From Azolla caroliniana (lineage: Eukaryota > Plantae > Polypodiophyta): a stretch of 64,000 bases of DNA. Below are positions 1-29,101 of the stretch, piece by piece. The stretch is from the NCBI GenBank assembly GCA_043228905.1, contig JBHGNT010000003.1:14632001-14696000 (forward strand). Direction: 5' to 3'. Under the pieces are notes generated by a model. It made no database searches. It was not told the DNA's origin and was given only the letters and a program-made list of their open reading frames with translations. The position numbers and the translations under genes were made by a program. Position 1 is the stretch's first letter. Every line of letters begins with the position of its first letter.

Positions 1-20
1 ACGAGGAAATCAGCGGAGCC

Positions 21-2699: not shown

Positions 2700-5080
2700 A
2701 CGTGCCTCGAGAGCACTTTCAGATTGCCGAAGTTCGGTCATCTGTTGAACGGTGAAACTAAGGTATTGAGTTATTTGGGAAAAATACATCTCAATGGACA
2801 TTTGTCGAGGAGGATCTCCTTGAGTTCCTTCTGCTTGAGCGGATGACATTGGGTCGTTATTTTGAGCCATTAAATGATTATTTCTGGCAATGAAATAGGA
2901 TAAGGTCAGACAAATAGTCATAACATCATGTCATGATGTAAACATATCATGGGCAAACATTAATCGATATCATGATCTCACGTCAATACCCCTCTAGACA
3001 TATGAGATGAGGTTCAAGATCAGGTTACTATGGTAACACAAAGGTGGTTTAAAAACCATGGTTGTGACAAATTAATGTCTTTCCCTGATCTCTATATTGA
3101 TTTTTTCATGGCGGCTCCTCGAGGCTCAACCATGTATGTTCGCGTCATGAGTAGTTTATACACGAAAAAAATGTTAACAATAAACTATGTTTCTGTGCCC
3201 ACATATGTGGTTTCGGCTCTTTAATTCTATTACGAGGACCCCGAAATGCACTTACACCTCAAGTCTAAACATGTGTTATAGTGATATGTATCAACGATGT
3301 TGTATGGTCTTGGTCATATTTGACCTCGGGACCTCGAGAACAAATGCATTAAACACTTGAGTCAACCAAGTAGGTCGCTCTTCTTGAATGTTTAATGCTT
3401 CATGCATATAAGAGATATGCGAGGCATTTGCCCATATATGTTTTTTTAAAAGAAACATATATGTCAAGATTCCTTATTTCCCCCTCGTTTACTACAAAAT
3501 ATGTTGGTATGTTACGTAACCTCAAATCTCGTAATTACGATGGCATACGCCAAAGTGCAACTTAATGGTCAAGCCAAATGAGCCCTCTTTTCGTAGTAGG
3601 CCCACGTGGCCCATCACATGGTTACGTCATTACGAATGCCTCTCGTAAGAATGATCTCATGGTGGCATTGTATCCATGTAACGAGGGAGGGATGTTGGAT
3701 ATGTGTGTCATAGGAGCGACCTCACATGAAGTGGGTCAAGCCCTATGTTCTCAACATCATTGTGGCTATAGGCATTTCTTTATGTAATAAAATCGAAGAC
3801 ACCAAGGAGAATGTCAACAATAAAAAATTGTTGAAAAAAGGGATGATGACAACGCCATTCTCATAAAAATGTGAGGACGGCCACCAAGATCCTTTCCCCG
3901 AAAAGGAAAACATTCGATATAAAGATCACGTAATATAAAATATACGTATATGTTTATTTATCACATATATACAATCAAATACATAAACACGTGACCACAT
4001 ATACGTATATTAAAAAAACCCGTAACATCAAATAGCCAACATATGATGAAATCAAGACACGTAATCGAGGCATGTCTACACACACGAAACATCCAAAAAT
4101 AAGGGTTAATCGTAATACACAATTGAGGTATTGACTTCATACGCATACGTAACATATGTATGTGAGCGTAATACGCAATTGAGGTATTAACCTCGTACGT
4201 ATACGGCACTAATCACATATTAAATATATGTCAAAAGAGGTATTGACCTTATACACATATGTACAAACGTTTTATAAAACCAATTAATTACCACTACAAC
4301 ATCATTGAATTAATGAAAACAATTACATATAGACTATACACATGATTAGATGGGAGAAGAAAATATAGAAAAAAAAGAAGGAAAGAGTTACTTAAGTTCC
4401 TTTGTTGATCGTTGTCTGGATCAAGGCTGACCGCACATCGATCGATCATGAATTGGGGCTCGGCTTATTTGGATATTGACGATGAAATTCAGTTACCAGA
4501 TTGGAGGCGTTGTCAAGATTCTCGGCTAGTTCCCAAGTACGATCATTAGGTGTATAACCTACCATCAATCAACAAAACAAAAGACAACAAAAGAAACATT
4601 AGCACATTAGCTTGGATACCAACTATTAGAGACATGAACTAATGTAAGCATTAGATAAGGATAGAATATAGATAGATATATAGAAAGGAGAGAGAAAAAG
4701 AAGGGTGCCGATCCACCCGACCACCCCCGAGCGAAGGGATCGAGACGGACTCGAGCCTCAATCAGTGTCCCATACCACCGTCGTGGCGTCAAGTCGTACC
4801 TGGTGCTGGCGCACTCGCTACAAGAGTTGACCCACCACAAGACAGAGTCTCGACGTAGTCAACCAAATGATCAAATGAGGGTAGCTAAGCCTCTTATTTA
4901 TAGCGATACCCAAGGCCCCCAGGCAAGTTCATACTTCACCTAATGGGTTATCTCAGTCTCGAGGATTAAAAGTAATCCTCCCCTTCTTTACACTCTCGTT
5001 TAACCCTCGCACTTATCCACGTGTATAGAATACTACAGTAAATTCTCACCACGGGATATTATATGGTCATGCCCGTAACA
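2700..5080 (-). mobile_element. Old minus-strand LTR retroelement 'K': 5' LTR (4624-5080), degenerate tRNA-iMet PBS, long AT-rich leader, start of a gag-like ORF interrupted by element A
   Basis: The minus strand starts TGTTAC at 5080, has TATAAATA near 4900, and ends CTAATA (decayed CTAACA) followed by GT-TGGTATCCAAGC (4610-4621). The minus-strand frame MSSAQAEGTQGD...LRQSESALEAR runs into the A LTR at 2700. Confidence 0.6.
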
Positions 5081-7158
5081 CTCACTGTTATATCATCAAT
5101 GCTTTCCTCGCTCCCTCGGATCCTCTACCCCTTTCGACCCTTGGTGGCGTACAATCTATCGTCCGCAAGGCAGGGCGCATATCACCATATGATCTCGTCT
5201 GAGTGCACTAGTGGGTATTCCCGCCCATACGCGGACGAAGTTCATTGCAACCCAAGTATTGGCGACGAAATCGGGCCTCATTTTCGACATTCGGGTTCAT
5301 GCTCCGAACGAGTTGCACTATCGATGCTTCCAACACCAGCTTGTAGTTGTAGTATAGTGGTGAGTATTCCCGCCTCACGTGGGGGACCCAGGTTCAATCC
5401 CCGGCAACGGCGCGAAGGCCGACACGAATCTTATGCCATCTCCTAGGGCATTGTCGCCTAGGATCCCTCACCGCCATATAATCAATACAATCCTCGCTCC
5501 CCCGGATCCTCTACCCATTTCGAGACCTTCGGGGTACAATCGGTCATCCGCGAGGCAGGGCGCACATCACCATATGATCTCGTCTGAGTGCGCTCGTGGG
5601 TATTCTCAATCCGAACATGTTGTACAATCGATATTTCCAACAGAAGGATGTCGTTGTAGCATAATGGTGAGTACTCCCGCCTGTCACACAGGTGACCTCG
5701 GTTCGTTCCTCGGATTCGATGTCATCTCCAACGGAATGGGCGCCTTGGATCCTGCATCGCCATATACTCAATGCTCCCCCGGTTCCTCTATGCCTTTCGA
5801 GCCCTTGTGGGGTATAGTCGGTCGTCCACGAAGCAGGGCGCATATAACCACATGAACTCATCCGAGTGAACTCGTAGGTATTCCCGCCCCTAAGCAGACG
5901 AATTTTGTTTCAACCCGTAAACTAGCGACGAGAGCGGGCCTCGTTTTCTACATTCGGGTCCATGCTTTGAACGAGTTATACGATCGATACTTCCAATACG
6001 AGGCTGTCATTGTAGTATAGTGGTGAGTATTCCCGCCTATCACGCGGGTGACTGGAGTTCGATCCCCGACAACGGCACGAAGGGCGGGACAAATCCGATG
6101 TCATCTCCTACAGAACGGACGCCTTGGATACCGCATCGCCATATCCACAATGCTTTCTTCACTCCCCCGGATCCTCTACCCTTTCCGAGCCCTTGCGGGG
6201 TACTATGGGTCGTCCGCAAGGCAAGGCACATATCACCATATGAACTCGTTCGACAACACTCATATGTATTCCCACCCTTAAGCGGACGAATTTCCCTTCA
6301 ACCCGTGTACTGGCGACGAAAACGGGCCTTGTTTTCTACATTCGGGTCCATGCTCTGAACCAGTTATACGATCAATCCTTCCAATACGAGGACGTCGTTG
6401 TAGTCTAGTGGTGAGTACTCTCGCTTGTCATGTGGGCGACCCGGGTTCGATTAGCGTCAAGGGTGGGAAGGGTTGGCCGAATATGATGTCATCTCCTACG
6501 GAACGGGCACCTTGGAACCCACATCGCCATATCCTCAATGCTTTCCTCGCTTCTCTGGATCCTCTACGCCTCTCTAACCCTTATGGGGAACTCTCGGTCA
6601 TCCAAGAGGCAGGGCGCATATCACCATATGAACTAATCCGAGTACACTCGTGGGTATGCCTGCCCATAAGCGAGCGAATTTCGTTTCAACCCGTAAACTG
6701 GCGACAAAACCGGGCCTTCTTTTCTACATTCGGGTCCATGCTCTGAACGAGTTATACGATTAATACATCTGAACACGAGGATGTCGTTGTAGTATAGCGG
6801 TGAGTATTCCCGCCTGTCACGTAGGCGACCCGGGTTTCATTCCCAACAACGGGGCGAATGGGATGTCATATCCTACGGAACGGGCGCCTTGGATCCCGCA
6901 CCGCCATATCCTCAATGCTTGCCTCGCTCCCCCAGATCCTCTACCCCTTTCGAGTCCTTCCAGGGTAGAGTCCGTCGTCCGCGAGGAAAGGCGCATATCA
7001 CCATATGATGTCGTGTGAGTGCACTCGTGGCTATTCCCGCCCATAAGCGGGCAAATTTTGTTGCGACCCGTGTACTGGCGACGAAACCTTGCCTCTTTTT
7101 CGATATTTGGGTCCATGCTCCGAACGAGTAACTCGATCGATACTTCCAACACGAGGCT

Positions 7159-10100
7159 GTCGTTGTAGTATAGTGGTGAGTATTCCCGCCTGTCACGCGG
7201 GCGACCCGGGTTCGATCCTCTCCAATGGCATGAAGGGCGGGGCAAATCCGATGTCATGTCCTACGGAACGGTCGCTTGGGATCCCGCACCACCATATCCT
7301 CAATGCTAGCCTCGCTCCCCCGGATCCTCTACCCCTTTCGAGTCCTTCCAGGGTAGAGTCTGTCGTCCGCGAGGAAAGGCGCATATCACCATATGATGTC
7401 GTGTGAGTGCACTCGTGGGTATTCCCGCCCATAAGCAGGCAAATTTCGTTGCGACCCGTGTACTGGCGACGAAACCTTGCCTCTTTTTCGATATTTGGGT
7501 CCATGCTCCGAACGAGTAACTCGATCGATACTTCCAACACGAGGCTGTCATTGTAGTATAGTGGTGAGTATTCCCGCCTATCACGCGGGCGACCCGGGTT
7601 CGACCCTCTCCAATGGCATGAAGGGCGGGGCAAATCCGATGTCATGTCCTACGGAACGGTCGCTTGGGATCCCGCACCGCCATATCCTCAATGCTTGCCT
7701 CGCTCCCCCGGATCCTCTACCCCTTTCGGACCGTTCCGGGGTAGAGTCGGTCGTCCACGAGGAAAGGCCCATATCACCATATGATGTCGTCTGAGTGCAC
7801 TCGTGGGTATTCCCGCCCATAAGTGGGCAAATTTCGTTGCGACCCATGTACTGGCGACGAAACCTTGCCTCTTTTTCGATATTTGGGTCCATGCTCCGAA
7901 CGAGTAACTCGATCGATACTTCCAACACGAGGCTGTCGTTGTAGTATAGTGGTGAGTATTCCCGCTTGTCACGCGGGCGACCCGGGTTCGATCCTCTCCA
8001 ATGGCATGAAGGGCGGGGCAAATCCGATGTCATGTCCTACGGAACGGTCGCTTGGGATCCCGCACCACCATATCCTCAATGCTAGCCTCGCTCCCCCGGA
8101 TCCTCTACCCCTTTCGAGTCCTTCCAGGGTAGAGTCTGTCGTCCGCGAGGAAAGGCGCATATCACCATATGATGTCGTGTGAGTGCACTCGTGGGTATTC
8201 CCGCCCATAAGCAGGCAAATTTCGTTGCGACCCGTGTACTGGCGACGAAACCTTGCCTCTTTTTCGATATTTGGGTCCATGCTCCGAACGAGTAACTCGA
8301 TCGATACTTCCAACACGAGGCTGTCATTGTAGTATAGTGGTCAGTATTCCCGCCTGTCACGCAGGCGACCCGGGTTCGATCCTCTCCAATGGCATGAAGG
8401 GCGGGGCAAATCCGATGTCATGTCCTACGGAACGGTCGCTTGGGATCCCGCACCGCCATATCCTCAATGCTTGCCTCGCTCCCCCGGATCCTCTACCCCT
8501 TTCGGACCGTTCCGGGGTAGAGTCGGTCGTCCACGAGGAAAGGCCCATATCACCATATGATGTCGTCTGAGTGCACTCGTGGGTATTCCCGCCCATAAGT
8601 GGGCAAATTTCGTTGCGACCCCTGTACTGGCGACAAAACCTTGCCTCTTTTTCGATATTTGGGTCCATGCTCCGAACGAGTAACTCGATCGATACTTCCA
8701 ACACGAGGCTGTCGTTGTAGTATAGTGGTGAGTATTCCCGCCTGTCACGCGGGCGACCCGGGTTCGATCCTCTCCAATGGCATGAAGGGCGGGGCAAATC
8801 CGATGTCATGTCCTACGGAACGGTCGCTTGGGATCCCGCACCACCATATCCTCAATGCTAGCCTCGCTCCCCCGGATCCTCTACCCCTTTCGAGTCCTTC
8901 CAGGGTAGAGTCCGTCGTCCGCGAGGAAAGGCGCATATCACCATATGATGTCGTGTGAGTGCAGTCGTGGGTATTCCCGCCCATAAGCAGGCAAATTTCG
9001 TTGCGACCCGTGTACTGGCGACGAAACCTTGCCTCTTTTTCGATATTTGGGTCCATGCTCCGAACGAGTAACTCGATCGATACTTCCAACACGAGGCTGT
9101 CATTGTAGTATAGTGGTCAGTATTCCCGCCTGTCACGCGGGCGACCCGGGTTCGATCCTCTCCAATGGCATGAAGGGCGGGGCAAAGCCGATGTCATGTC
9201 CTACGGAACGGTCGCTTGGGATCCCGCACCGCCATATCCTCAATGCTTGCCTCGCTCCCCCGGATCCTCTACCCCTTTCGGACCGTTCCGGGGTAGAGTC
9301 GGTCGTCCACGAGGAAAGGCCCATATCACCATATGATGTCGTCTGAGTGCACTCGTGGGTATTCCCGCCCATAAGTGGGCAAATTTCGTTGCGACCCATG
9401 TACTGGCGACGAAACCTTGCCTCTTTTTCGATATTTGGGTCCATGCTCCGAACGAGTAACTCGATCGATACTTCCAACACGAGGCTGTCGTTGTAGTATA
9501 GTGGTGAGTATTCCCGCCTGTCACGCGGGCGACCCGGGTTCGATCCTCTCCAATGGCATGAAGGGCGGGGCAAATCCGATGTCATGTCCTACGGAATGGT
9601 CGCTTGGGATCCCGCACCACCATATCCTCAATGCTAGCCTCGCTCCCCCGGATCCTCTACCCCTTTCGAGTCCTTCCAGGGTAGAGTCCGTCGTCCGCGA
9701 GGAAAGGCGCATATCACCATATGATGTCGTGTGAGTGCACTCGTGGGTATTCCCGCCCATAAGCAGGCAAATTTCATTGCGACCCGTGTACTGGCGACGA
9801 AACCTTGCCTCTTTTTCGATATTTGGGTCCATGCTCCGAACGAGTAACTCGATCGATACTTCCAACACGAGGCTGTCATTGTAGTATAGTGGTGAGTATT
9901 CCCGCCTGTCACGCGGGCGACCCGGGTTCGATCCTCTCCAATGGCATGAAGGGCGGGGCAAATCCGATGTCATGTCCTACGGAACGGTCGCTTGGGATCC
10001 CGCACCGCCATATCCTCAATGCTTGCCTCGCTCCCCCGGATCCTCTACCCCTTTCGGACCGTTCCGGGGTAGAGTCGGTCGTCCACGAGGAAAGGCCCAT

Positions 10101-10262
10101 ATCACCATATGATGTCGTCTGAGTGCACTCGTGGGTATTCCCGCCCATAAGCAGTTGAATTTCGTGGTGACCCATGTCCTGGCGACGAAACCTTGGCTCG
10201 TTTTCGACATTCGGGTGTATGCTCTGAACTAGTAACTCGATCGAAACTTCCAACACAAGGAT
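7159..10262 (+). repeat. 776-bp dimeric higher-order repeat (4 A/B pairs) of tRNA-Asp pseudogene units
   Basis: Diagnostic variants alternate: GTCGTTG vs GTCATTG, and CGAGTCCTTCCAGGG vs CGGACCGTTCCGGGG. All 8 tRNAs have T-stem 3' strand CTCTC instead of CCCGG. Confidence 0.95.
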
Positions 10263-10340
10263 GTCGTTGTAGTATAGCGGTGAGTATTCCCGCCTGTCAC
10301 GCGAGCGACCCGGGTTCGATCCCCGACAACGGCGCGAAGG

Positions 10341-10910
10341 ACAGCGCGGATGGGAAACGGTATGAGGAGTACCCGGCTACGGAGAGCCGGATGATACAGG
10401 CCCGGTGTGATCCGGATGAGGAGTACCCGGCTACGGAGAGCCAGATGATACAGGCCCGGTGTGAACTGGAGGAAGAGACATATTCGTAAATATGTTTCTG
10501 AGAGCCCATCGAGGCTATATTTGTAAATAGCCGAAAAGTCATATTAGTATAAATATGACTTAGGGCAAACTTTTAGTATCTGTTGTCATTTTCTGTTTTG
10601 CACGAAATCAGAGTGTGTAACTGTACTGAGAGAGAGAGAGAGAGATCGAGCTTGTTGCCTCTGTTGTAACCGCCGCGTGTGGCGAAGATCTTTGAGCACG
10701 AGGTCGTTGCCTCAGTGAACTCACTATTGTACATTCTCACATAGTGACAGTTTGCAGACCGTGGGCTGCCGTGGTTTTTTCCCCTAGTTTGGGGTTTTCC
10801 ACGTAAACCTCCTGTGTATGTTTCTCATCTTTGTGTCGAGTTTTATTTCCCGTTTTTCTGTGTATCTTTCTACCCTCGGTTGTGGCCGAGCGTCGCGCAT
10901 AAGGAACGTC
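10341..10910 (+). mobile_element. Terminus-less LTR fragment related to the Copia G LTR, inserted in the array
   Basis: Shares GCCCATYGAGGCTATATTTGTAWATAGCC, ATATTAGTATAAATATGAC, (GA)n and CTCGGTTGTGGC with LTR 57016-57591. Has an internal 54-bp duplication (10362/10416). Confidence 0.8.
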
Positions 10911-11259
10911 GGGGCAAATAGGATGTCATATCCTACGAAACCGGCGCCTTGGATCCCGCACCGCCATATCCTCAATGTTTTTCTCGTTCCCCCGGATCCT
11001 GTACTCCTTTCGATCCGTTCCAGGGTAGAGTCGGTCGTCACGAGGCAAGGCGCATATCACCATATGATGTCGTCCGAGTGCACTCGTGGGTATTCCCACC
11101 CATAAGCGGGCGAATTTCGGTGCGAACCGTGGACTAGCGACGGAACCTTGCCTCGTTTTCGACATTCGGGTCCATGCTCCGAACGAGTAACTCGATCGAT
11201 GCTTCCAACACGAGGATGTTGTTGTATGATAGTGGTCAGTATTCCCGCCTGTCACGCAG

Positions 11260-11918
11260 TGTCGCGTTGTTACGCGTGTGCGTATAGAACGAGGCGGGAC
11301 CGTGGGGGTCTTGGACTGAGGAATAACCGATCAGGAGTAGGTGCCAGAAAGACAACGGTCGTGCTTCCACACACACACATAGATACACAGAAACCGCGAT
11401 CGAGTGAAACAAGACAAATGTGTGTATGTGTATAAATATATCAGACAAAAAGGGGGTTATAACCGGTGGGCTGGTGAGCAAGACTCTCTCACGAGCACGT
11501 ACACGCACACACACAAAAGAGCGAGATGGAGACCCTGCTGGAAGCACACTTGTGTTCCGCGGAGCAGAGTCAGCCTCTCAAAACCTTACACAGACAAAGA
11601 CCGCGAAAGCTAGAGGAGCAGAGCTCAATCTCTAGTCCGGTAGCACTTCGTCCTCCCCAAAAGCGATCCCCTCTACGATTCCTCTCCCTCTCTTTTATAT
11701 CCCAAGGAGGGAGGCCCTTACATCATCTTTATTCTCTCTCCTTTCGGACAGAGATACATCTCGATTTTCTACCTAACCAATGCATGTTGTCCAGGATATT
11801 TATATCAGCTGCCTTGTACTTATTTATATATATTACAACAAAACTTGTGCCCGCGTGTTAGGGCCGGTTCGTGCACATTATTCTCCAACTCCGCCTAGGG
11901 ACAGTTTTCTTCACGATA
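11260..11918 (-). mobile_element. Solo LTR of the Gypsy A/B/F family inserted in the anticodon arm of a tRNA-Asp copy
   Basis: Reverse complement starts TATCGTGAAGAAAAC and ends TAACAACGCGACA. The tRNA 5' part lies at 11218-11259 and the 3' part from 11919. Degenerate 4-bp TSD GCAG/GCTA. Confidence 0.88.
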
Positions 11919-14900
11919 GCTAGAAACCCGGGTTCAATCCCCTGCAACGGCGCGAAGGGCAGGGCGAATCCGATGTCATGTCCTATGGAACAGTCGCCTG
12001 GGATACCGCACCGCCATATCCTCAATGCTTTCCTCGCTCCCCCTGATCCTCTACCCCTTCCAAAGTAGAGTTGGTTGTCCACAAGGCAGGGTGCATATCA
12101 CCATATGATGTCTCCTGAGTGTACTCGTGGGTATTCTTGCCCTTAAGCATGCGAATTTCGTTGTGACCTGTGTAGTGGCGATGAAACCTTGCCCAGTTTT
12201 CGACATTCGGGTCCATGCTCTGAACTAGTAACTCGATCGAAACTTTCAACACGAGGATGTCGTTGTAGTATAGTGGTCAGTATTTCCGCCTGTCACGCAG
12301 ACGACCCGGGTTTGATCCCCGACAACGGCGTGAAGGGCGGGGCGAATAGAATGCCATATCCTATGGAACGTGCGCCTTGGATCCCGCACCGCCATATCCT
12401 CAATGCTTTTCTCGCTCTTCCGGATCCTCTACGCCTTTTGAGCCATTCCTGGGTAGAGTCGGTTGTCCACGAGGCAAGGCGCATATCACCATATGATGTC
12501 GTCTGAGTGCACTTGTGGGTATTTTCGACATTTTGGTCCATTCTCCAAATGATTTATACGATCGATAGTTCCAATATGAGGAGTATAGTGCCGAGTGTTT
12601 TCGGGTGTCACTTAGGTGACCTGGGTTCAATCCCCGGCAAGGTCGCGGAGGGCACGTCGAATACGATGTCATCTCCTACAGAACTCGCGCCTTGGATCCC
12701 CCATCGCCATATCCTCAATGCTTTCCTCGCTCCCCTGGATCCTGTACCCCTTTCGAGCCCTTACGGGGTAAATTCAGTAGTCTGCGAGGCAGGGTGCATA
12801 TAGCCATTTGATCTCGTCCTAGTGCACTTGTGGGTATACCCGCCCAAAATCAGGCGAATTTCGTTGCGAACCTTGTACTGGTGAGGAAACCGGACTTCGT
12901 TTTCAACATTCGGCTCCATGCTCCGAATGAGTTATATGATCGATAGTATCAATACAAGGATGTTGTTCTAGTATAGTGGTGAGTATTCCCGGGTGTCACA
13001 TGGGTGACCCAGGTTCGATCCCCGGCAAGGGCGCGAAGGGCACGGCGAATCCGATGTCATCTCCTACGGAAATGGCACGTTGGATCCCGCATTGCTATAT
13101 CCTCAATGCTTTCCACGATCCTCCGGATGGTCTACTCATTTCGAGCCCTTGCAAGGTATTGTCGGTCGTCCGTGATGCAGGCCGCATATCATAGTACGGC
13201 ACTTGTGGGTATTTCCGCCCTTAAGCAAATTAATTTCGTTTCAACCCATGTATTGGAAATGAAACAGATTCTCTTTTTCGACGTTTGGTTGAATGCTCCG
13301 AACGAGTTATACGATCGATACTTCCAATACGAGGATGTCGTTGTAGTAAAGTGGTGAGTATTCCCCACTGTAACGCGAGTGTCCCGGGTTTGATCCCCGG
13401 CAATGGCGCAAAGGGCCAGGCGAATCCGATGTCATGTCTTACGGAACGGTCGCTTGGGATCCCCCACCACCATAACCTCAATGCTTTCCTCACTCCCCCG
13501 GATCCTCTACCCCTTTGGAGCCCTTCCGGAGTAGAGTTGGTTGTCCACATGGCCGGGTGCATCTCACCATATGATGTCGCCTGAGTGCACTCGTGGGTAT
13601 TCCCGCCCATAAGCAGGCAAATTTCGTTGTGACCCGTGTAGTGGCGATGAAACCTTGCCTAGTTCTCGACATTCGGGTCCATGCTCCGAACTAGTAACTC
13701 GATCGAAACTTCCAACACGAGGATGTCGTTGTAGTATAGTGGTGAGTATTCCCGCCTGTCACGCGGGCGACCCGGGTTTGATCCCCACGAACGGCGTGAA
13801 GGGCGGGGCGAATAGAATGTCATATCCTACGGAACGCGCGCCTTGGATCCCGCACCACCATATCCTCAATGCTTTTCTCGCTCCCCCGGATTCTCTACGC
13901 CTTTTGAGCCGTTCCGGGGTAGAGTCGGTTGTCCACGAGGCAAGGCGCATATCACCATATGATGTCGTTCGAGTGCACTCGTGGGTATTCTCACCCTTAA
14001 CCGGATGAATTTCGTTTCAACCTATGTATTGGAAACAAAACAGAGTCTCTTTTTCGACATTCGGTTGAATGCTCCGAACGAGTTATACGATTGATACTTC
14101 CAATACGAGGATGTCGTTGTGGTAAAATGTTGAGTATTCCCCCCTGTGACGCAGGTGTCCCGGGTTTGATCCCTGGCAATGGCGCAAAGGGCGGGGCAAA
14201 TCCAATGTCATCTCTTACGGAATGGTCGCCTTGAATACCGCATGGCCATATCGTCAATGCTTTGCTCGATCCCCCGGATTCTCTACGTCATTCGAGCCCT
14301 TGCGGGGTACTGTCGGTCGTCCACGAGGAAGGGCACATATCACCATATGAACTCATTCAAGTGCACTCGTATGTATTTCCTCCCATAAGTGCACGAGTTT
14401 CGTTTCAGCTCGTCCATTGGTGAGTATTCTCGCCTATCATGCGGGTGACCCGTGTTCGATCCCCAGCAATGGCGCGAAGGGAGGGGCAAAGCCATAGTCA
14501 TCTCCGACGGAATGGGTGCGTTCGATCCCGCATCGGCGTATCCTCAATGCTTTCCATGCCCCCCCAGATCCCCTACCTCGTCCGAGCCCTGGATAGGTAT
14601 TATCAGTCGTTCACGAGGCAAGGTGCATACCACCATATGCACTGATTCGACTGCACTCGTAGGTATTCCCGTCCTTAAACGAATGAATTTCGTTTCCGTC
14701 CTGTCATGCCGGTTACCCGGGTTCCATCCCCGGCAACGACGCGAAGGGTGGGGTGAAATCCGATGTCATCTCCTATGGCATGGGCACCTTGGATCCCGCA
14801 ACGCCATATCCTGAATGCTTTCCTCACTCCCCCGGATCCTTTACACCTTTCGAACCCTTGCGGGGTAATGTCGGTCGTCTGCGAGGCAGGGCGCGTATCA

Positions 14901-17170
14901 CCATATGATGTCGTCTGAGTGCACTCGTGGGTATTCTCGCCCATAAGCAAGTGAATTTCGTTTTGACTCGTGTACTAGCGACGAAACAGGGCCTCGTTTT
15001 CTACTTTCGGCTCCATGCTCCGAACGAGTTATACGATCGATAGTTCCAGTACGAGGATGTCGTTGTAGTATAGTGGTGAGTATTCCCCGATGTCACGCGG
15101 GTGATCCGGGTTCGATCCCCGGCAAGGTCACGGAGGGCGCGGCAAATCCGATGTCATCTCCTACGGAACCGACGCCTTGGATCCCGCATCGCCATATCCT
15201 CAATGCTTTCCTCGCTCCCCCGGAACCTCTACCCCCTTTCGAGCCCTTGCGGGGTAGAGTCGGTCATTCGCGAGGGAGAGCGCATATCACCATTTGAACT
15301 AGTGCGTATACCCGTCCAAAATCGGCTGAATTTTGTTGCGAACCGTGTATTGGTGACGAAACCGGGTTTCATTTTTGACATTCGGGTCCATGCTCCGAAC
15401 GAGTTATACGATCGACACTTCCAATACGATGATGTCGTTGTAGTATAGTGGTGAGTATTCCCGCCTCACACACGGGTTACCCAGGTTTCATCCCCGGCAA
15501 AGGCGCGAAGGGCGGGGCAAATCTGATGTCATCTCCTACAAAACGAGCACCTTCAATCCCGCATCGCCATATCCTCGATACTTTCCTCGCTCCCCCGGAT
15601 CCTCTACCACTTCCGATCCCTTGCGGGGTACTATTGGTCGTCCGGGAGGCATGTCGAATTTCACCATATGAACTCGTTCCAGTGCACTCGTGGGAATTCC
15701 CGCCACCCCTAAGTGGACAAATTGCGTTTCCTACATTTGGGTCCATGCTCCGAATGAGTTATACGATGGATAGTTCTAACATGAAGATGTCGTTGTAGTA
15801 TAGTGGAGAGTGTTCCCGCCTGTCACGTGGGTGAGCCGGGTTTGATACCCTGCAACGGTGCGAAGGGCGGGGAGAATCTGTTGTCATCTCCCACGGAACG
15901 GTCGCCTAGGATACCACATCACCATATCCTCAATGCTTTCATCACTCCCCCAGATCCTCTTCCCTTTTCGAGACCATACGAGGTAGATTCTTTCGTCCGC
16001 GAGGTAGGGCGCATATCACAATATGATGTCGTCCGAGAGCACTCGTGGGTATTCCCGCCCAAGCGGACGAATTTCGTTTTGACCCGTGAACTAGCCTCGA
16101 GACCTTGCCTCGTTTTCGAAATTCGATGTCATCTCTTACGGAACGAGTGCCTTGGATCCCGCACCGACATATCCACAATTCTTTCCTCGCTCCCCCTGAT
16201 TCTCTACTCCTTTTGAGCCCTTGCGGAGTACTATCGGTCCTCCACGGGGCAGGGAGCATATCACCATATACATTCGTGGGATATTCCTGCCCTTAAGCAG
16301 ACTATTTTCGTTTCAACCCGTGTACTGGCGACGAAAGCAGGCCTTGTTTTCTGAAATCGAGTCCATGCTTTGAACGAGTTATACGATTGATAGTTCCAAT
16401 ACGAGGACGTCATTGACCTATAGTGGTGAGTATTCCCGCTTGTCACGCGAATGGTGGGGCGAATCCGATGTCATCTCGTACGGAACGGGTGCCTTGGATC
16501 TTGCACCGACATATCCTAAATACTTTCCTCCCTCCCCCGGATCCCCTACACATTTCATGACAATCGATACTTCCAATAGGAGGATGTTGTTGTAGTATAG
16601 TGGTGAGTATTCCCGCTTGTCACGTGGGTGACCTGGGTTCGATCCCCGGCAATGGTGCTAATGGCGGGGCGAATATGATGTCATCTCCTAGGGAACGGGT
16701 GACTTGGATCCCGCACCGACATATCCTCAATGCTTTCCTCGCTCCCCCCGGATTCCCTACGCCTTTTGAGCCATTGTGAGTACTATCGGTCCTCCATGAG
16801 GCAGGGAGCATATCACCATATGCATTCGTGGGATATTCCCGCCCTTAAGCGGACTATTTTTGTTTGAACCCGTGTACTGGCGACGAAAGTGGGGCTTGCT
16901 TTCTATATTCGAGTCGATGCTTTGAACGAGTTATACGATTGATAGTTCCAATAAGAGGATGTCCTTGTAGTATAGTGGTGAGTATTCCCGCTTGTCACGC
17001 AGGTGACCCGAATTCGATCCCTGGCAACTGCGCGAATGGCGGGGCGAATCCAATGTCATCTCCTACATAACGGGTGCCTTGGATCCCCCACCGAAATATC
17101 CTCATTGTTTTCCTTGCTTCCCCGGATCCCCTACGCCTTTCGAGTCAATCGATAGTTCCAATACGAGCAT

Positions 17171-17242
17171 GTCGTTGTAGTATAGTGGTGAGTATTCCCG
17201 CTTGTCACGCGGGTGACCCGGGTTCGATCCCCGGCATTGGCG
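17171..17242 (+). tRNA. tRNA-Asp(GUC), near-intact (one acceptor-stem mismatch)
   Basis: Full 72-nt cloverleaf. The 3' acceptor strand CATTGGC gives a T5.T mismatch. Confidence 0.55.
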
Positions 17243-18739
17243 CGAATGTCGGGGCGAAACCGATGTCATCTCCTACGGAACGGGTGTCTTGGATCACGCA
17301 CCGACATATCCTGAATGTTTTACTCGCTCCAGTGGTTCCCCTACGCCTTTCGAGCCAATCGATACTTCCAATGCGAGGATGTCATTGTAGTATAGTGGTG
17401 AGGATTCCCGCTTGTCACGCGGGTGACCCGGGTTCGATCCCCGGCAACGGCGCGAATGGTGGGGCGAATCCGATGTCATCTCCTACAGAATGGGTGGCTT
17501 GGATCCCCCACCGACATATCCTGAATGTTTTCCTCGCTCCCCCGGATCCCGTATGCCTTTCGAGCCAATCGATACTTCCAATACGAGGATGTCATTGTAG
17601 TATGGTGGTGCGTATTCCTGCTTGTCACGCGGGTGACCCGGGTTCGATCCCCGGCAACGGGGCGAAACCGATATCATCTCCTACGGAACGGGTGCCTTGG
17701 ATCCCGCACCGACATATCCTGAATGCTTTCCTCGGTCCCCCGGATCCCCTACGCCTTTCGATCCCTTGTGGGTATAATCGGGTGACCCGGGTTCGATCCC
17801 CGGCAACGGCACGAATGGCGGGGCGAATGCGACGTCATCTCGTACGGAACGGGTGCCTTGGATCCCGCACCGACATATCTTGAATAAATTCCCCGCTCCC
17901 TTGGATCCCGTACGCCTTCGACCACATCGATACTTCCAATACGAGGATGTCGTTGTAGTATAGTGGTGAGTATTCCCGCTTGTCACGCGACTGACCCGGG
18001 TTCGATCCCCGGCAACGGCACGAATGGCGGTTACCGGGGCGAATATGATGTCATCTCCTATGGAACGGGTGCCTTGGTTCCGCACCGACATATCCTCAAT
18101 TCTTTCCTCGCTGCCCCTGATTCTCTACTCCTTTTGAGCCCTTGCGGGTACTATCGGTCCTCCACGAGGAAGGGAGAATACCACCATATGCATTCGTGGG
18201 ATATTCCCGCCCTTAATTTCATTTCAACCGGTGTACTAGCGAGGAAACCAGGGCTTAGATTCTAGATTCGATTCCATGCTTTGAATTAGTTATACGATTC
18301 ATAGTTCCAATACGAGGATGTCGTTGTAGTATAGTGGTGAGTATTCCCGCTTGTCACGCGGGTGACCCGGGTTCGATCCCCGGAAACGGCGCGAAGGGCG
18401 GGGCGAATCTGATGTCATCTCCTACGGAACGGGTGCCTTGGAATGCGCACCGACATATCCTGAATGTTGTCCTCGCTCCCTCGGATCCCCTACGCCTTTC
18501 GAGCCAATCGATACTTCCAATGCGAGGATGTCATTGTAGTATGGTGGTGAGAATTCCCGCTTGTCACGCTCGTGACCCGGGTTCGATCCCCGGCGACGGC
18601 GCGAATGGCGGAGCGAATCCGATGTCATCTCCTACGGAACAGTTGCCATGGATCCCGCACCCACATATCCTGAATGTTTTCCTCGCTCCGCCGGTTCCCC
18701 TACTCCTTTCCAACCAATCGATACTTCCAATACGAGGAT

Positions 18740-18811
18740 GTCGTTGTAGTATAGTGGTGAGTATTCCCGCTTGTCACGCGGGTGACCCGGGTTCGATCCC
18801 CGGCGACGGCA
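18740..18811 (+). tRNA. tRNA-Asp(GUC) with fully paired stems but discriminator A instead of G
   Basis: All stems pair (G-U allowed) and the anticodon is GTC. The final base is A. Confidence 0.6.
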
Positions 18812-19844
18812 CTAATGGCGGGGCGAATCCGATGTCATCTCCTACCGGACGGGTGCCTTGGATCCCGCACCGACATATCATCAATGTTTTCCTCGGTCCC
18901 CCCGATCCCCTACACCTTTTGAGGCCATCGATACTTCCAATATGAGGATGTCCTTGTAGTGTAGTGGTGAGTATTTCCCCTAATCACGCGGGTGACCCGG
19001 GTTCGATCCCCGCCAGCGACGCGAATGGCGGAGCGAATCTGATATCATCTCAGATAGTACGGGTGCCTTGGATCCCGCACCGACATATCCTCAATGCTTT
19101 TCTTGCTCCCCTGGAGCTTTGTTACGACCTTTGATGTCGTTGTAGTATAGTGGTGAGTATTTCCCCTAATCACGCGAGTGACCCAGGTTCGATCCCCGCC
19201 AGCGACGCGAATGGCGGAGCGAATCTGATGTCATCTCGGATAGTACGGGTGTCTTGGATCCCGCACCGACATATCCTCAATGCTTTTCTTGCTCCCCTGG
19301 ATTTGCTACGACCTTTGAGGCCTTGTGGGATACTATTGGTCCTCCACAGGGCAAGGAGCATATCACCATATGCATTCGTGGGATATTTCCGCCCTTAAGC
19401 GGACTAATTTCGTTTCAACCCGTGTACTAGAGACGAAATCAGGCCTTGTTTTTACATTCGAGTCCATGCTTTGAATAAGTTATAGGATTCATAGATCCAA
19501 TACAAGGATGTCGTTGTAGTATAGTGGTGAGGATTCCCGCTTGTCACGCGGGTGACCCGAGTTCGATCCCTGGCAACGGCGTGAAGGGCGGGGCGAATCC
19601 GATATCATCTCCTACGGATGGGGGCCTTGTATCCCGCACTGATATATCTTGAATGCTTTCCTCCCTCCCCCGGATCCCCTACGCCTTTTGAGCCCATCGA
19701 TACTTCCAAAACGAGGATGTCGTTGATGAACATATGCATTCGTGGCATATTCCCACCCCTAAGCAGACAAAATTCGTTTCAACCCTGGCGACGAAAACAA
19801 GGTTTTCGACATTCGATTCCATGCTTTGAATGAGTTATACAATT

Positions 19845-19916
19845 GTCGTTGTAGTATAGTGGTGAGTATTCCCGCTTGTCACGCGGGTGACCCGGGTTCG
19901 ATCCCCGGCAATGGCG
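19845..19916 (+). tRNA. tRNA-Asp(GUC), foldable (G4-U wobble); upstream flank partly deleted
   Basis: 72-nt cloverleaf with intact A and B boxes. Confidence 0.7.
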
Positions 19917-21648
19917 CGAATGGCGGGACGAATCCCATGTCATCGTGTATGGAAATAGTGCCCTTGATCCCACACCCACATATCCTCAATGTTTTCCTCG
20001 GTCCCCCGAATCCCTTATGCCTTTGGAGCCATTCAATATTTCCAATACGAGGATGTCGTTGTAGTATAGTGGTGAGTATTCGCTTGTCACGCGGGTGACG
20101 CAGGTTCGATCCCCGGCGACGGCGCGAATCGGATGTCATCTCCTACGGAACGGGTGCCTTGGATCCCGCACCGACATATCCTGAATGTTTTCCTCGCTCC
20201 CCCGGATCCCCTACGCCTTTCGAGCCCTTGCGGGGTACTATCAGTCCTCCACGGGGCAGGGAGCATATCACCATATGCATTCGTGGGATATTCCCGCCCT
20301 TAAGCGGACTAATTTTGTTTCAACCCGTGTACTGGCGATGAAAAGGGGCTACATTTGAGTCAATGCTTTGAACGATTTATATGATGGATAGTTCAAATAC
20401 GAGGATGTTGTTGTAGTATAGTGGTGAGTATTCCCGCTTGTCACGCGGGTGACCTGGGTTCGATCCCCGACAACGGTGCGAATGGCGGGGCGAATCCGAT
20501 GTCATCTCGTACAGAACGGGTGCCTTTCATCCCGCACCGACATATTCTGGATGGTTTCCTCGCTCCCCTGGATCCCCCACGCCTTTCGAGCCCATCGATG
20601 AGAAGAAACTCTCATGTTCGATTCTGATGAAATTGCTTCTAGCACTACGAGGATGTTGTTGTAGTATAGTGGTGAGTATTCCCGCTTGTCACGCGGCTGA
20701 CCTAGGTTCGATCCCCGACAATGGTGCTAATGGCGGGGCGTATACGATGTTATCTCCTATGGAATGGGTGACTTGTATCCCGCACCGACATATCCTCAAT
20801 GCTTTCCTCGCTCCCCCGGATTCCTTACACCTTTTGAGCCCTTGCCCGGATTCCTTACACCTTTTGAGCCCTTGCGGGTACTAGTGGTGAGTATTCCCAG
20901 TTGTCACGTGGGTGACCCGGGTTCAATCCCTAGCAATGGCGCTAATGTTGGTTGCCGTGGCGAATACGATGTCATCTCCTACGGAATGGGTGCCTTGGAT
21001 CCCGCACTGACATATCCTCATTGTTTTCCTCGCTCCCCAGATCCCCTACGCCTTTCCAACCAATCGATATTTCCAATACGAGGATGTCGTTGTAGTATAG
21101 TGGTGAGTATTCCCGCTTGTCAGTTTATGACCCGGGTTCGATCCCCAGCAACGGCGCGAATCCGTTGTCATCTCCTACAGAACGACTGCCTTGGATCCCG
21201 CACCGACATATCCTCATTGTTTTCCTTGCTCCACGGGATGCCCTACGCCTTTCAAGCCAATCGATACTTACAATACGAGGATTTCATTGTAGTATAGTGG
21301 TGAGTATTCCCGCTTGTCACGCGGGTGACCCAGGTGACATCCCCGACAATGTCGGGAATGGCGGGGCGAATCCGATGTCATCTCTTATAGAATGGGTGCC
21401 TTGGATCCCTCACCGACATATCCTCCTCGCTCCCCCAGATTCCCTACGCCTTTTGAGCCCTTGCGGAGTAGTATCGGTCCTCCACGGGGCAGGGAGCATA
21501 TCACCATATACATTCGTGGGATATTCCCACCCTTCAGCAGACTAATTTCGTTTCAACCCGTGTACTGGCGACGTAAGCGGGTCTTGTTTTCTACATTCGA
21601 GTCCATGCTTTTAATGAGTTATACGGTTGATAATTCCAATACAAGGAT

Positions 21649-21720
21649 GTCGTTGTAGTATAGTGGTTAGTATTCCCGCTTGTCACGCGGGTGACCCGGG
21701 TTCGATCCCCGGCAACGGCG
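21649..21720 (+). tRNA. tRNA-Asp(GUC), intact
   Basis: GTCGTTGTAGTATAGTGGTTAGTATTCCCGCTTGTCACGCGGGTGACCCGGGTTCGATCCCCGGCAACGGCG: all stems pair, discriminator G, upstream TTATA (~-30) and CAA (~-12) retained. Confidence 0.85.
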
Positions 21721-22193
21721 CGAATGGTGGGTCAAAGCCGATGTCATCTCCTACCGGACGGGTGCCTTGCCACGCTTCCCCGGATCCCCTACACAATCGC
21801 TACATCCAATACGAGGATGTCGTTGTAGTATAGTGGTGAGTATTCCCGCTTGTCACGCGGGTGACCCGGGTTCGATCCCCGGAAACGACGTGAATGGAGG
21901 GGTGAATCTGATGTCATCTCGTACGGAATGGGTGCCTTGGATCTTGCACCGACATATCCTCAATGCTTTTCTCCCTCCCCCGGATTTCCTACGACTTTTG
22001 AGCCCTTGCGGGGTACTATCGGTCCTCCACGGGGCAAGGAGCATATCACCATATGCATTCGTGGGATATTCTCATCCTTAAGCGGACTAATTTCGTTTCA
22101 ACCCGTGTACTGGAGACGAAAGCAGGCCTTGTTTTCTACATTCGAGTCCATTCTTTGAATAAGTTATACAATTGATAATTCCAATACAAGGAT

Positions 22194-22265
22194 GTCGTTG
22201 TAGTATAGTGGTGAGCATTCCCGCTTGTCACGTGGGTGACCCGGGTTCGATCCCTGGCAACGGCG
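22194..22265 (+). tRNA. tRNA-Asp(GUC), near-intact/likely pseudogene
   Basis: One D-stem mismatch plus two new G-U wobbles. Confidence 0.45.
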
Positions 22266-23478
22266 TGAATGGCGGGGCGAATCCGATGTCATCTCCTACG
22301 GAACGGGTGCCTTGGATCCCGCACTGATATATCCTGAATGCATTCCCGCTTGTCACGCGGGTGACCCGGGTTCGATCCCCGGCAACGGTGCGAAGGGCTA
22401 GGGCTAATGCATTGTCATCTCCTACGAAATGGAAGGCGCCTTGGATTGTGCATCACCATATCCCTTTCGAGCGCTTCCGGGGTAGAGTCGGTCGTCCGTG
22501 AGGCAGGGTGCATATCACCATATGATGTCGGCCGAACTTGTGGGTATTCCCTCCCATAAGCGGGCGAATTTAGTTGCGACCCGTTTACTGGCGACGAAAA
22601 CTTGCCTCGTTTTCGACATTCGGGTCCATGCTCCGAACAAGTAACTAGATCAATACTTCCAACATGAGGATGTAGTTCTAGTATAGTGGTGAGTATTCGC
22701 GCTTGTCACGGGGGTGACCCGTGGTTGATCCCTGGCAACGGTGCGAAGGGCGGGTTGAATCCGATGTCATCTCCTACGGAACGGGCGCCTTGTATCCCGC
22801 ACTGCCATATAGGGGGTTTATATAATTCATCCAATGTAACGGTTACATGACTGTTATAAATAAGGCTGTTACTTGTAGGCATGATCATAATTGTGCATGT
22901 ATCTATTAACATACTCATCCTCACACAGTCATTTAGTTTACACATACACATCAACCACATCATTACACATACCCTTATGCCTCCCTGTATATTCTTACGG
23001 GTAATACATGGCACGCCTGTGGGACTGTGTATCGCATGGTGAACCAATTTTCCATGGCAACTTTTCTCGATCGGAACTCCATCGGTTATCTCGACGGTCA
23101 GAAATCCCTTGAGAGGATCACTACTCTACGATCGATAACTTTGATCGGAGCTTTGCTTGACTCGAACCTTCTTGTTCGGTTAGCACAAGTCGTGATTGGA
23201 TGATACACCAATCAGCTAGTTCAATGTGGCATGGGTCATGAAATGTGTTGTGGGGCTTGTATATTCTCTAGTTTATTCATGTGAGTTGGGTTTTATGTTT
23301 TATACACCTTGGTCTTTCGAATTTTTACCCTCAGGTTTTTGTTTTTTTATTTTTATTTTTTTTTCTTTTTCTGGCCCTTGAGTTTTCAAAATTCTGCATT
23401 CTGCTGTCCACTTTTTGAAATCTCACGTCATGCCCTTGAGCTTTTGAAATTTCCCCTTCATACCCCACTTCTCTCTCT

Positions 23479-23932
23479 TGTTACTTCGTAGGGCCGGACA
23501 ATAGCCTAACACAGGGTGTCTACAGAAGACACTTCACCAAAGGGTGTTACGGTGGAATAGAGTTAGACCGACAATTAATCCGACCTTAATCGGTTACTTA
23601 AACAACAAAACCTTAATCTTAATACACGTGTAAGATAGAAAGTAATTAGCATAGAACGGTAATCAATGCACAAAGATAAGGAATTAGAGCTTTATTAATT
23701 CTCCGCCGTCATTTACAATGTAACCAGGCCTTTTTATAGATCACCGGCTCTGCCTACAAAACGATGCCAACCGGCACACTAATATGAACCGGTCCGAATC
23801 TGGATCAGCATACCGATTCCGGTCCGTCCGTTCACTTCTCTAAAATCTACTTAATTACTTAATATCCTAATAACAGCCTCCGATTATTTCTACCCTTCCA
23901 TATGTCCTTCACTCCTTGCTAGCTGGCTAACA
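23479..23932 (-). repeat. 3' LTR of Gypsy C (inner boundary uncertain, 23875 or 23932)
   Basis: Shares CCTAACACAGGGTGTC, ACACTTCACCAAAGGGTG and GCATACCGATTC with 55719-56207. Confidence 0.75.
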
Positions 23933-23974
23933 CATGGCATGCCCGTGGGACAGTACCTTGTACGTCGAATCCCA

Positions 23975-26900
23975 CTATCCGGCCTTCAATCCTCGTCTAA
24001 AATGTCCAGGATGCTCTGATCGAGGGGCTCTAAGGGTTCTTTGGAATGCTGATCGGACTGTTGTTGCTGCTCCTCCTGCGGCTGCTCCGTTGGTTGTGAA
24101 AGTTGCTCCGGCTATTGCTCCGTTGGATGTTGTTGTGGTTCCTGCTGCTGCACGGTCTCCGGCTCTTCTAGGCATTGCTCCTCCTATGGCTGTGCTGGTG
24201 GTTGTTGCGGTGCCTCCTCCCTTGGTTGCTCCTCCTGAGTTACATTCGGTTGGCTTGTCCCAGCCTTGGCTCGGTCCGTCCCTTGGTCCGACAATGGCTC
24301 TTCATCACTGATATTGATTGTTGTCGTGCTCTTCGTCGCCTCTTGCCGTAGCCTCTCCTTTTCGTAACTTTCAAACTGGATTTGGTTATCCAGCCGATCA
24401 TCGTCCAATGGTGCCACTAGTTGCCGGACCACCGTTATCTGTTCATCAGCCAAGGCTACGAAGTCCTCCACGAATTCATCTATCACGGCAGCAAAGTCTT
24501 CCTTTTCTAGCTTATAGAACTCATCACCTTCTTTCTGCCGGTTTTCCGCGTCCGCCCTTAGCAACTGTAGCTTGGCAACATGCTTCGCCCATTTTGACCA
24601 CCATTATACTGAGTTGTCTTCAATCAAACACTTCGTTCGATTCTTCCATGCATGTACAATGCACCGGATCCACTCCAGCCCCATCTTTGATTTATCTTCA
24701 GCGGTCTGCCGGTCATCTTTCAATTGTTTAATTAGGTTCGCCGTTACCACCTCCTGGTCCTTGTAGCGCATTAGTTGATTCTGATACTTTGTCTGCACTC
24801 TTTGTAAGACCATGGTAGTGCGTTCCGTTTCCCCCTGATGTTGCATCTGGAATTCCATGCGTTCCTTCGCCGCTTCAACTCGTATGGTTTCCTTCTCAGC
24901 CCGTTCTTCTGCTAGTGTCGTCTCTGCTCATTACACTTCAATCTGGAGCTCGAACATCTTTTCCTGCTGCCGGTCAATGTCGGTGATAAGCTTCTTGTAT
25001 TCCGACTCAACATGTTTATAATCCCGGTGCAGGCGGTCAAACTCTTCTAATTTCTGCTTCAGCTTCTGATTGATCTGGAGGCGAGCTCGGTCTTCCCTAT
25101 CCTTTTGCTGTCGAAGCTCTTCTTTGAGTCTCTCGATCTCCATTTCCGTCATCCTTCGGAGTTTATCCTTCTCTTGCAGCACTTTCTCCTTCTCTTCCTT
25201 AAGTCGGTCATAGGCTTGGTGTCCCTTCCATAGACTGTCTTCTGCTCGTCGGAGATTGTTAGCAGTCTTCCGTTGTTCCTCCACCGCCATTTGTAATTCT
25301 CTTTCCCTGGCCCGTAATGCTTCCTATGCGGCCAGGTCTTCTTTGAGAATGGCAAGATCTTGCGCTTGCTTTGTACTTATAACTGGGTTTGTTCCCGGCA
25401 CTGGCGTCGTATTATTATGTACAGTTGTCGGTGTTTCATTATTTTGTAGATGTACCGGAGCCATCGGTTCCTACTCCTGGGGTTCTGTGATGACCTTCTT
25501 AGCCACTTCTTCCTTGGCTATTTCTACTTCTCGTTCCAAGTTCCGGATCCTTGACCGAGCCTTCTCTAGTTCTCCGGTTGTGGCTAGCAACCGGTCCACT
25601 TCTGCTTTCTCCTTTGCCTCCATATAATGGACCACTCCAGCCATTTGCTCACCGACCCACTGCAGCCATTGGCTACCGGTGCCTTGTGGCTGTGTCGATG
25701 CGGAGGGTTGGCCGATTTTTGCGCTTGCCAGTGTTCGAGCTGGTCTGATTGCCAGATCTAGCTCTGGCTGGGTACCACATGGCAGTATCGGCTCTGGTTG
25801 TGCCTGAGTCGGCCGTGCTAGCTCTGGTTGGTCTTGCTGTGCCGGTGAGGTAGGCAACTGAATCACCGACTCCTGAATCATCGGTCTTCTCATGTTCTGA
25901 CCGGCCGGCGAGGGATGTGGCGCAGGAACTTCTGTCACCGGTTTTGCTTGAACCGGTTCCGCTTCCACCCTTGGCTCTAGGCCCTCAGTGCGGGCCATCG
26001 ACATCCTATCTTTTTTTGGACCCGATTGCTTGCCGGCATGGTCGGCAATGCTCTTCTTCTAGCGCCGCTGGAGGTGCTCGCTGGGCTTCTCCGTCGTTTC
26101 CTCCTCCTGAGTCCCAAGATTGATTTCCATGGCCAAGGGATCTGGCTCCTGTTGACCCGATCGGGGAAATGTAATTTTATTGGCCGTGCCGGTGTTGCCT
26201 CCCGCGTCTCTGTCTGGCTAGGCTGCTCGTTCGTCGTTTTCTCCGTCTCGGCCTCTTTCCCCTTGGTTGCCTTAGCAGCCAATAGTTGCTGCCTTTTCGA
26301 AGTCGGTTTGGAGGTTCCTTCGGCCGTTCTTCCCCGCTTCTTTGCCGTGTTGCACTCCACTGGTGTTGCCAACAGTGTGAGCCATTGCGCCATTGCCGAC
26401 CATATTTTTCTTCCATCCTTCCCTCTTACCGAGTCGATGGCCGCGCGCAGTCCGTCAGCGATCAACACCGACTAGTCCACCTGTATGCCTTCATATGTAG
26501 CAATAATTAACCCAGCTCTGTTCCTAGGCATTGCCGGGGGTCGAGAGTAAATATGGCCATACTCGTGCAATACATGGGCAATCTCTCAAAATAAGCCATC
26601 CTCGCCGCCCTGTGTGTGATATGCCTTGCTAGCCAGAGAATACTCACCGAAGTATTTCGTGAGCTGCTCCGGGGTAGGGTTGTCAACGATGAAGATGCCG
26701 CCCTCGGGTAGGCCCGTTAGGGCATGGATGGCCTCCTCTGTGATTACTTCTGTGTCGATGGCTTTGACAACCCTTTCCGCCTCTTTGTGTGGTGGCGCCT
26801 CCATGATCCTCAAGAATCCTTCCAAACCGTGTTGCTTTAACCACTTCTTGGCTGCCTCCAAGAGCGTCATGCAGTCCATTTCTCCTTCTGAGTTGGTGGT

Positions 26901-29100: not shown

Positions 29101-29101
29101 T

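Follow-up and report, generated by a model that had tools for sequence, protein, structure and literature searches.

What becomes of a tRNA gene that has been multiplied in tandem more than fifty times? This question is raised by a locus of the fern Azolla caroliniana, located within 64,000 nucleotides (nt) of GenBank assembly GCA_043228905.1 (contig JBHGNT010000003.1, positions 14,632,001 to 14,696,000 of the forward strand). This whole stretch is called the window below, and all coordinates are counted from its first letter. It contains a 17.7 kb array of head-to-tail units derived from a tRNA-Asp(GUC) gene. The locus belongs to the known class of plant tandem tRNA-gene clusters. It is probably a homocluster of tRNA genes that has turned into satellite DNA, that is, a satellite of mostly dead tRNA-Asp genes. 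A preliminary description, made from the letters alone, had proposed that a tRNA gene cluster became a satellite here. This proposal is in agreement with the head-to-tail units, the higher-order repeat, the amplification of dead copies and the invasion by retroelements reported in the following. Tandem tRNA-gene clusters are recognised in plant genomes yet poorly understood, and the locus adds an Asp array in a non-seed plant.

A hidden Markov model (HMM) of the unit covers the array without gaps, with every unit on the plus strand:

5077-22810, plus strand: whole tRNA-Asp(GUC)-derived tandem array with 53 tRNA-like segments (unit HMM, tRNA HMM, ARAGORN, Rfam, Tandem Repeats Finder (TRF))

The tRNA HMM, built from 12 of the better copies, detects 53 tRNA-Asp-like segments between 5343 and 22742. 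Near full length are 44 of them; the others are truncated by deletions, and one is split by an insertion. Together with one copy outside the array, at 35249, they make up the 45 near-full copies analysed here. ARAGORN predicts 34 tRNA-like genes in the window. At 5343-22266 lie 33 of these, all on the plus strand, including 28 of type Asp-GTC. The Rfam RF00005 gathering score is passed 32 times in the window and 31 times within the array. Both the extent (5081-22811) and the number of genes (about 50) given in the preliminary description are borne out by these figures. Across the window, the unit HMM finds nothing comparable beyond the array except a piece at 34909-35323. Many head-to-tail copies on a single strand, one mark of a satellite, are evident from the tiling and from TRF periods of 388, 375, 355 and 210 bp. 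Local homogenisation into a higher-order repeat, another mark, is present as a 776-bp dimer repeated four times.

How are the units built? A uniform 388-bp unit with a 316-bp spacer had been assumed, and this has to be revised: According to TRF and the start-to-start spacings, it is only one among several unit types. TRF reports 388 bp at 5773-10322 (90% matches), then 388, 375 and 355 bp at 76-78%. In the right part, it finds 210 bp at 16941-17761 and 18301-19115 (86-87%), followed by 186-197 bp. In combination with the spacings, this yields about 13 units of 388 bp, units of 355-382 bp, 8 units of 210 bp and variants of 170-250 bp. Identity between units across the array amounts to 60-90%. 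Two domains can be distinguished:

5077-16585, plus strand: long-unit domain of 388-bp units and their 355-382-bp derivatives, each composed of tRNA, spacer, ghost tRNA and spacer (spacings, TRF periods 388/375/355, unit alignment)
16586-22810, plus strand: mixed domain with runs of 210-bp units (16961-17780, 18320-19135 and others) among 335-375-bp units, containing the best-preserved tRNA copies (TRF, spacings, alignment)

An alignment of representative units reveals how the two main types are related. The 210-bp unit consists of the tRNA (72 nt), a trailer of about 115 nt and a leader of 23 nt. The 388-bp unit is the 210-bp unit plus about 178 bases between trailer and leader. This extra block holds a second, degenerate tRNA-Asp of which the 5' two-thirds can be recognised. 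When the two halves of the unit consensus are aligned locally, the score is 39 compared to 16.5+/-2.3 for shuffled sequences (z = 9.9). One example is the following:

7394-7442, plus strand: ghost of the 5' two-thirds of tRNA-Asp in a 388-bp unit, at unit positions ~236-284 (half-versus-half alignment, sequence)

As the extra block carries this degenerate second tRNA-Asp, the 388-bp unit is, judged by its sequence, an old dimer with one decayed gene. A second and younger level of repetition lies within the long-unit domain:

7159-10262, plus strand: young 776-bp higher-order repeat, 4 dimers or 8 units (unit identities, shared tRNA defect)

In this repeat, identity is 99-100% between every second unit and 94-98% between adjacent ones. 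All eight tRNA copies, 97-100% identical to one another, have CTCTC in place of CCCGG in the 3' strand of the T-stem and, in addition, A at the discriminator position 73 (A73). Since all of them share the same defect, the most recent amplification copied dead genes.

How many of the copies could still encode a tRNA? All 21 stem pairs and the GTC anticodon are retained in 4 of the 45 near-full copies (16586, 18740, 19845 and 21649). Six further copies have one broken pair. In the remaining ones, 2-9 pairs are broken, parts are deleted or the anticodon is changed (ATC, GTA, GTG, CAC). This means, the earlier statement that most copies are decayed is correct. The same holds for the statement that the copies at 21649, 18740 and 19845 fold fully: They have the top three Rfam scores, and 16586 is the fourth fully folding copy.

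21649-21720, plus strand: best copy, 21 stem pairs, GTC, discriminator G73, 59.9 bits; its first run of four T residues (TTTT) lies 247 nt downstream (Rfam, stem check)
18740-18811, plus strand: fully folding copy, 58.9 bits, discriminator A73 rather than G73 (Rfam, stem check)
19845-19916, plus strand: second intact-looking copy, 57.4 bits, one G-U pair in the acceptor stem, G73, TTTT at +76 (Rfam, stem check)

An intact cloverleaf combined with GUC and G73, as required for a functional gene, is found in just three copies (16586, 19845, 21649). Besides 18740 with its A73, it is lacking from the remaining 41 near-full copies and from the 8 truncated ones. A terminator is a further feature of such genes. 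In plants, several T residues normally follow a tRNA gene within 25 nt or less (PMC13578239). Among the 45 copies, none has TTTT within 25 nt downstream. The nearest TTTT is located at +62 and the median is about +160, with +76 being typical of the 210-bp units and +254 of the higher-order repeat. Upstream of the array copies, no TATA-like motif was found, and the AT content is 54%. With two or three of 53 copies looking intact and none having a nearby RNA polymerase III (Pol III) terminator, the array would be predicted to add little or nothing to the cellular tRNA-Asp pool. For genome annotation, this is a warning, as 31 array copies pass the Rfam threshold while at most three look usable. 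The best copy lies in a shortened 170-bp unit, and in 21649-21890 no TTTT occurs before the next copy at 21819. For this reason, a Pol III transcript starting at 21649 would be dicistronic.

A tRNA-Asp reservoir that is normally silent and becomes active again in certain cells or under certain stresses might be considered instead. In Arabidopsis, the Ser-Tyr-Tyr cluster is reported to behave in this way (PMC13578239), and by analogy the full cloverleaf, GTC and G73 of copies 21649 and 19845 as well as the lower diversity of the tRNA part compared to the spacer would fit. Against it speak the broken stems, deletions, changed anticodons or A73 in about 95% of the copies, the lack of a proximal terminator in every copy and the newest amplification, which comprises dead copies. 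A conditional reservoir is therefore regarded as quite improbable.

Are order and copy number of the units real? DNA contigs from three runs, two from studies of the same species and one from a second species, were compared with the region 16900-22860 in 30 bins. All 30 bins are covered, and several short contigs are exact or differ by one base. No contig reaches beyond one or two units, as might also be the case if repeats had been collapsed or mis-joined during assembly. Such an artefact is scarcely credible: The differences of 1-40% between units follow an ordered pattern, the array has unique insertions and junctions, and variants specific to single units are matched exactly by short contigs of an independent study. 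In run X1, unique pieces have a depth of about 25-38 and bins that hold the tRNA one of 600-17,600, while some spacer bins are at single-copy depth. This means, tRNA-Asp-like sequence is present in roughly hundreds of copies, and many spacer variants are local to the array, as deduced from the several spacer bins at single-copy depth.

The depth data also bear on a possible role as (peri)centromeric satellite with CENH3 or with pericentromeric heterochromatin. Its satellite-like layout with a higher-order repeat and its retrotransposon-rich setting would suit such a function. However, the array is short (17.7 kb) and heterogeneous, with the 60-90% identity between units mentioned above, and the spacer bins at single-copy depth indicate that unit variants are local. 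A centromeric function is consequently very unlikely.

In the second species (run X4), contigs run from the 3' end of the tRNA into a different, T-rich trailer, which points to other, canonical-looking tRNA-Asp loci in that species. This observation is confined to the second species; the matches listed do not extend to the species of the array. Presumably, tRNA-Asp is supplied by other loci with T-rich trailers. The single RNA-labelled run yielded no contig on the array and is uninformative.

Have the tRNA parts decayed like ordinary spacer? Per-column diversity was calculated after removal of the redundant copies of the higher-order repeat:

tRNA positions 1-38: 0.101
A box: 0.060
B box: 0.131
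tRNA positions 39-72: 0.207
leader: 0.250
trailer: 0.245

The A box is without mismatch to the reference in 33 of the 44 near-full array copies, the B box in 21 of them. The persistence of both boxes claimed in the preliminary description is thus reflected in diversities below the 0.245 of the spacer. In the tRNA part, diversity is lower than in the spacer by a factor of 2-4, most markedly in the 5' half and the A box. Each of the ten 12-nt windows with the highest conservation in the unit overlaps the A box.

Several observations weigh against the interpretation as a mostly dead satellite. Diversity is 0.151 for the whole tRNA vs. 0.245 for the spacer (p = 6e-7). The difference is found within every base class: A/T columns (0.094 vs. 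0.152, p = 5e-4), G/C columns outside CpG (0.135 vs. 0.287, p = 1e-6) and CpG columns (0.262 vs. 0.349, p = 0.03). Because diversity lies below that of the spacer in each class, the tRNA-derived part is, as far as can be read from the sequence, not fully neutral over the history of the array. In addition, most units retain CAA at -12, and two or three copies still appear usable. The silent state of the array is a presumed one.

Other data reveal no such protection. Singletons per non-CpG site do not differ between tRNA and spacer (0.76 vs. 0.88, p = 0.47), nor do fixed differences between the long- and short-unit subfamilies (4 of 72 positions in the tRNA vs. 10 of 135 in the spacer, p = 0.77). 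In the higher-order repeat, 5 private changes fall into the 72-nt tRNA part compared to about 7 in the spacer of about 300 nt. It had been suggested that decay of the boxes at the rate of the spacer would argue against a function. The outcome is mixed: Overall diversity is lower in the boxes, but the youngest changes spare the tRNA no more than the spacer. In our reading, the tRNA part, and especially its promoter-bearing 5' half, was probably shielded through much of the history of the array, while the present-day copies seem to drift freely without current constraint. The past protection could be due to selection or to preferential amplification of better copies. The subfamilies have their own tRNA variants (C32/C44 vs. 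T32/T44), which speaks against the idea that dispersed genes still convert the array copies to a strong degree. Within the array, CpG columns vary more than all others (0.35 vs. 0.15 for A/T). The observed/expected ratio of CpG is 1.0 in the array and in the retroelements alike, so that no deamination footprint is visible in the sequence.

The better-kept promoter half of dead genes is a measurable puzzle. One explanation would be that the units are kept as elements that bind TFIIIC/Pol III, with which the array would delimit or organise chromatin or would give rise to small RNAs, either tRNA-derived or from read-through, instead of to tRNA. Within the unit, the 12-nt windows of highest conservation lie over the A box and the D arm, both boxes are less diverse than the spacer, and CAA at -12 is conserved. 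Moreover, the 3' acceptor and T-stem strands are near spacer level (0.207), and constraint on a promoter fits this better than constraint on a cloverleaf. On the other hand, the youngest changes do not spare the tRNA part, the anticodon loop is conserved, too, without being part of the promoter, and copies with a damaged B box have been amplified as readily as others. Retention of the units for this purpose is rather unlikely. The more general idea that tRNA-derived satellites of this plant are maintained for their A-box/B-box promoter instead of for tRNA, either to organise chromatin through bound TFIIIC/Pol III or to deliver tRNA-like small RNAs with a regulatory role, is unlikely as well. 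If true, it would account for the promoter half being better conserved than any other part of the dead genes. Boundary, centromere and small-RNA roles would all have to be deduced from this better-kept half as their sole basis.

The reading as a tRNA gene cluster turned satellite can be cast into a sequence of events. At first, a tRNA-Asp(GUC) gene would have been amplified head to tail together with about 140 bp of its flanking DNA, either by unequal crossing-over or by replication slippage. The 388-bp unit might then go back to an early dimer whose second tRNA degenerated into a ghost. As to the 210-bp unit, it would be the original monomer or else derive from a 388-bp unit by deletion. Later, blocks might have been re-amplified irrespective of whether their tRNAs were intact, the youngest block being the 776-bp higher-order repeat with dead copies only. 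LTR (long terminal repeat) retrotransposons would have entered the array and its surroundings, and a piece of the array would have been copied to a place 23 kb away. Since the A box and the 5' half are better kept, many units could still bind TFIIIC/Pol III, provided that chromatin permits. Such binding would be expected to yield long read-through transcripts instead of tRNA. The locus displays the life course of a cluster in one place: dimerisation, gene loss, re-amplification of dead copies, retroelement invasion and dispersal of a fragment.

How does the array compare to known systems? Plant tRNA clusters described in recent surveys are few and compact homo- or heteroclusters of Pro, Ser/Tyr, Gln, Ile and Ala genes. 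They are reported to be epigenetically silenced in Arabidopsis and are left out of functional tRNA counts (PMC13437025, PMC13578239, PMC11700998). The array shares with the homoclusters of flowering plants (Arabidopsis Pro and Ser-Tyr-Tyr, maize Ile/Ala, barley Gln) the head-to-tail arrangement of a single tRNA gene with homogenised flanks. In contrast to them, its isotype is Asp, which is not among the clustered isotypes in the surveys. It also differs in that most of its copies are pseudogenes, its unit is a decayed dimer, dead copies form a higher-order repeat, and its host is a non-seed plant. The Arabidopsis Pro cluster is characterised by conserved poly(T) tracts, whereas the array copies have no poly(T) after the gene. 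Phytophthora infestans, which belongs to another kingdom, has arrays of thousands of tandem tRNA genes in 0.5-0.85 kb units with about 1,300 predicted pseudogenes. Their growth was ascribed to unequal crossing-over, and a role in chromatin was speculated on (PMC9584435). These arrays have been described as showing little divergence, whereas the Asp array is strongly decayed. Azolla filiculoides, compared here by count alone, is a non-seed plant with an extreme number of tRNA genes, about 7,500 (PMC13578239, PMC13437025). Literature searches for a tRNA-Asp satellite or a tRNA-derived satellite found nothing pertinent.

As in tRNA-derived short interspersed elements (SINEs) and the satellites that stem from them, the tRNA-related part with A and B box is better kept than the rest of the unit. 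Unlike tRNA-derived SINEs, the units are strictly tandem and contain a whole tRNA gene instead of a chimaeric head, and poly(A) or simple-repeat tails, target-site duplications and dispersed copies are absent from the window. A tRNA-derived SINE was therefore discarded as an explanation: There is no tail, all copies are tandem, and the sole copy outside is a segmental duplicate.

The array is broken by two foreign insertions:

10336-10910, no strand assigned: insertion 1, an unclassified dispersed repeat (sequence; TRF 10362-10464)
11261 to about 11905, minus strand: solo LTR of the gypsy family (its ends match the LTR pair 41152-41854/47450-48153)

At the start of insertion 1, 54 bp are directly duplicated, and the insertion includes a (GA)n tract (10358-10477). 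Its relatives are located at 57081-57480 and 61726-61825. The solo LTR splits one tRNA copy at about position 42. The LTR pair matching its ends is 94% identical and flanks a gypsy element. The junction between this LTR and the tRNA is encountered a second time in the only array-like piece elsewhere in the window:

34893-35323, plus strand: displaced array duplicate, cut at 35323 by unrelated DNA (identity, shared LTR/tRNA junction)

Over 413 nt, 34904-35315 is 95.4% identical to 11914-12325 of the array, and at most 89% to any other unit. As it carries the same LTR/tRNA junction, the piece at 34.9-35.3 kb is a displaced duplicate of part of the array.

On either side, the array is surrounded by decayed retroelements:

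1-2700, plus strand: left gypsy remnant with a reverse transcriptase (RT) open reading frame (ORF) at 21-1496 and an LTR-like part at 2150-2671 (domain and similarity scans)
22811-34892, no strand assigned: right block of nested, decayed gypsy elements with an RNaseH/integrase ORF at 28176-29057 on the minus strand and an RT ORF at 31610-33442 on the plus strand (domain scans)

Between the left remnant and the array lies unclassified non-coding DNA (2700-5076), and Pfam scans of the ORFs in the immediate flanks of the array yielded no match. RT, RNaseH and integrase domains of the gypsy or copia type were detected at 21-1496, 28176-29057 (minus strand), 31610-33442, 39989-41014, 44160-45692 and 50099-53098 (minus strand). 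They lie on both sides of the array, in accordance with the retrotransposon setting described earlier. For the gypsy RT ORF, the best named relatives (50-74% identity) are from Riccia sorocarpa, R. fluitans, Calypogeia fissa, Adiantum nelumboides and Physcomitrium patens. The named relatives of the copia ORF are from seed plants, with at most 53% identity. The designation as a plant tRNA-Asp, which had been given without knowledge of the source organism, fits the relatives of the retroelements in liverworts, a fern and a moss. Judged by its retroelement proteins, the DNA most likely belongs to a bryophyte or fern and not to a seed plant. An oomycete origin, suggested by the GC content, by an Atlas neighbour cluster in which Oomycota dominate and by the likeness to the P. 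infestans arrays, was rejected on account of these relatives.

The array starts (5077) at unit position 123 and ends (22810) at position 139. In view of these edges and of flanks that have no similarity of LTR length, the array was taken neither for the internal region of one LTR element nor for an array bounded in the same phase. In unit phase, the two edges overlap by about 16 nt (CACTGTTATAT vs. CACTGCCATAT). This near-coincidence may be due to chance or may be a trace of the origin or excision of the array.

In the right block, the plus-strand gypsy element at about 29.2-34.8 kb ends in an inverted copy of its own primer-binding-site region (GGGTTCACCA...). It is followed by an inverted 65-nt LTR terminus at the place where the polypurine tract and the 3' LTR are expected (positions 34717-34905, 29698-29769 and 41855-41900). 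This inverted end could be the head-to-head remnant of a second element. Further to the right, copia-type elements with 83-90% identity are present in opposite orientations (36844-38454, 39219-41148, 48469-54309). One of them is interrupted by the gypsy element 41152-48153, a nesting typical of old repeat-rich DNA. The GC content of this DNA is near 51%. Over the entire window (1-64000), CAG/CTG is depleted (observed/expected 0.65-0.67), CpG is at 1.02 and CCG/CGG is enriched (1.2-1.26), a trinucleotide bias that is unusual for retroelement-rich plant DNA.

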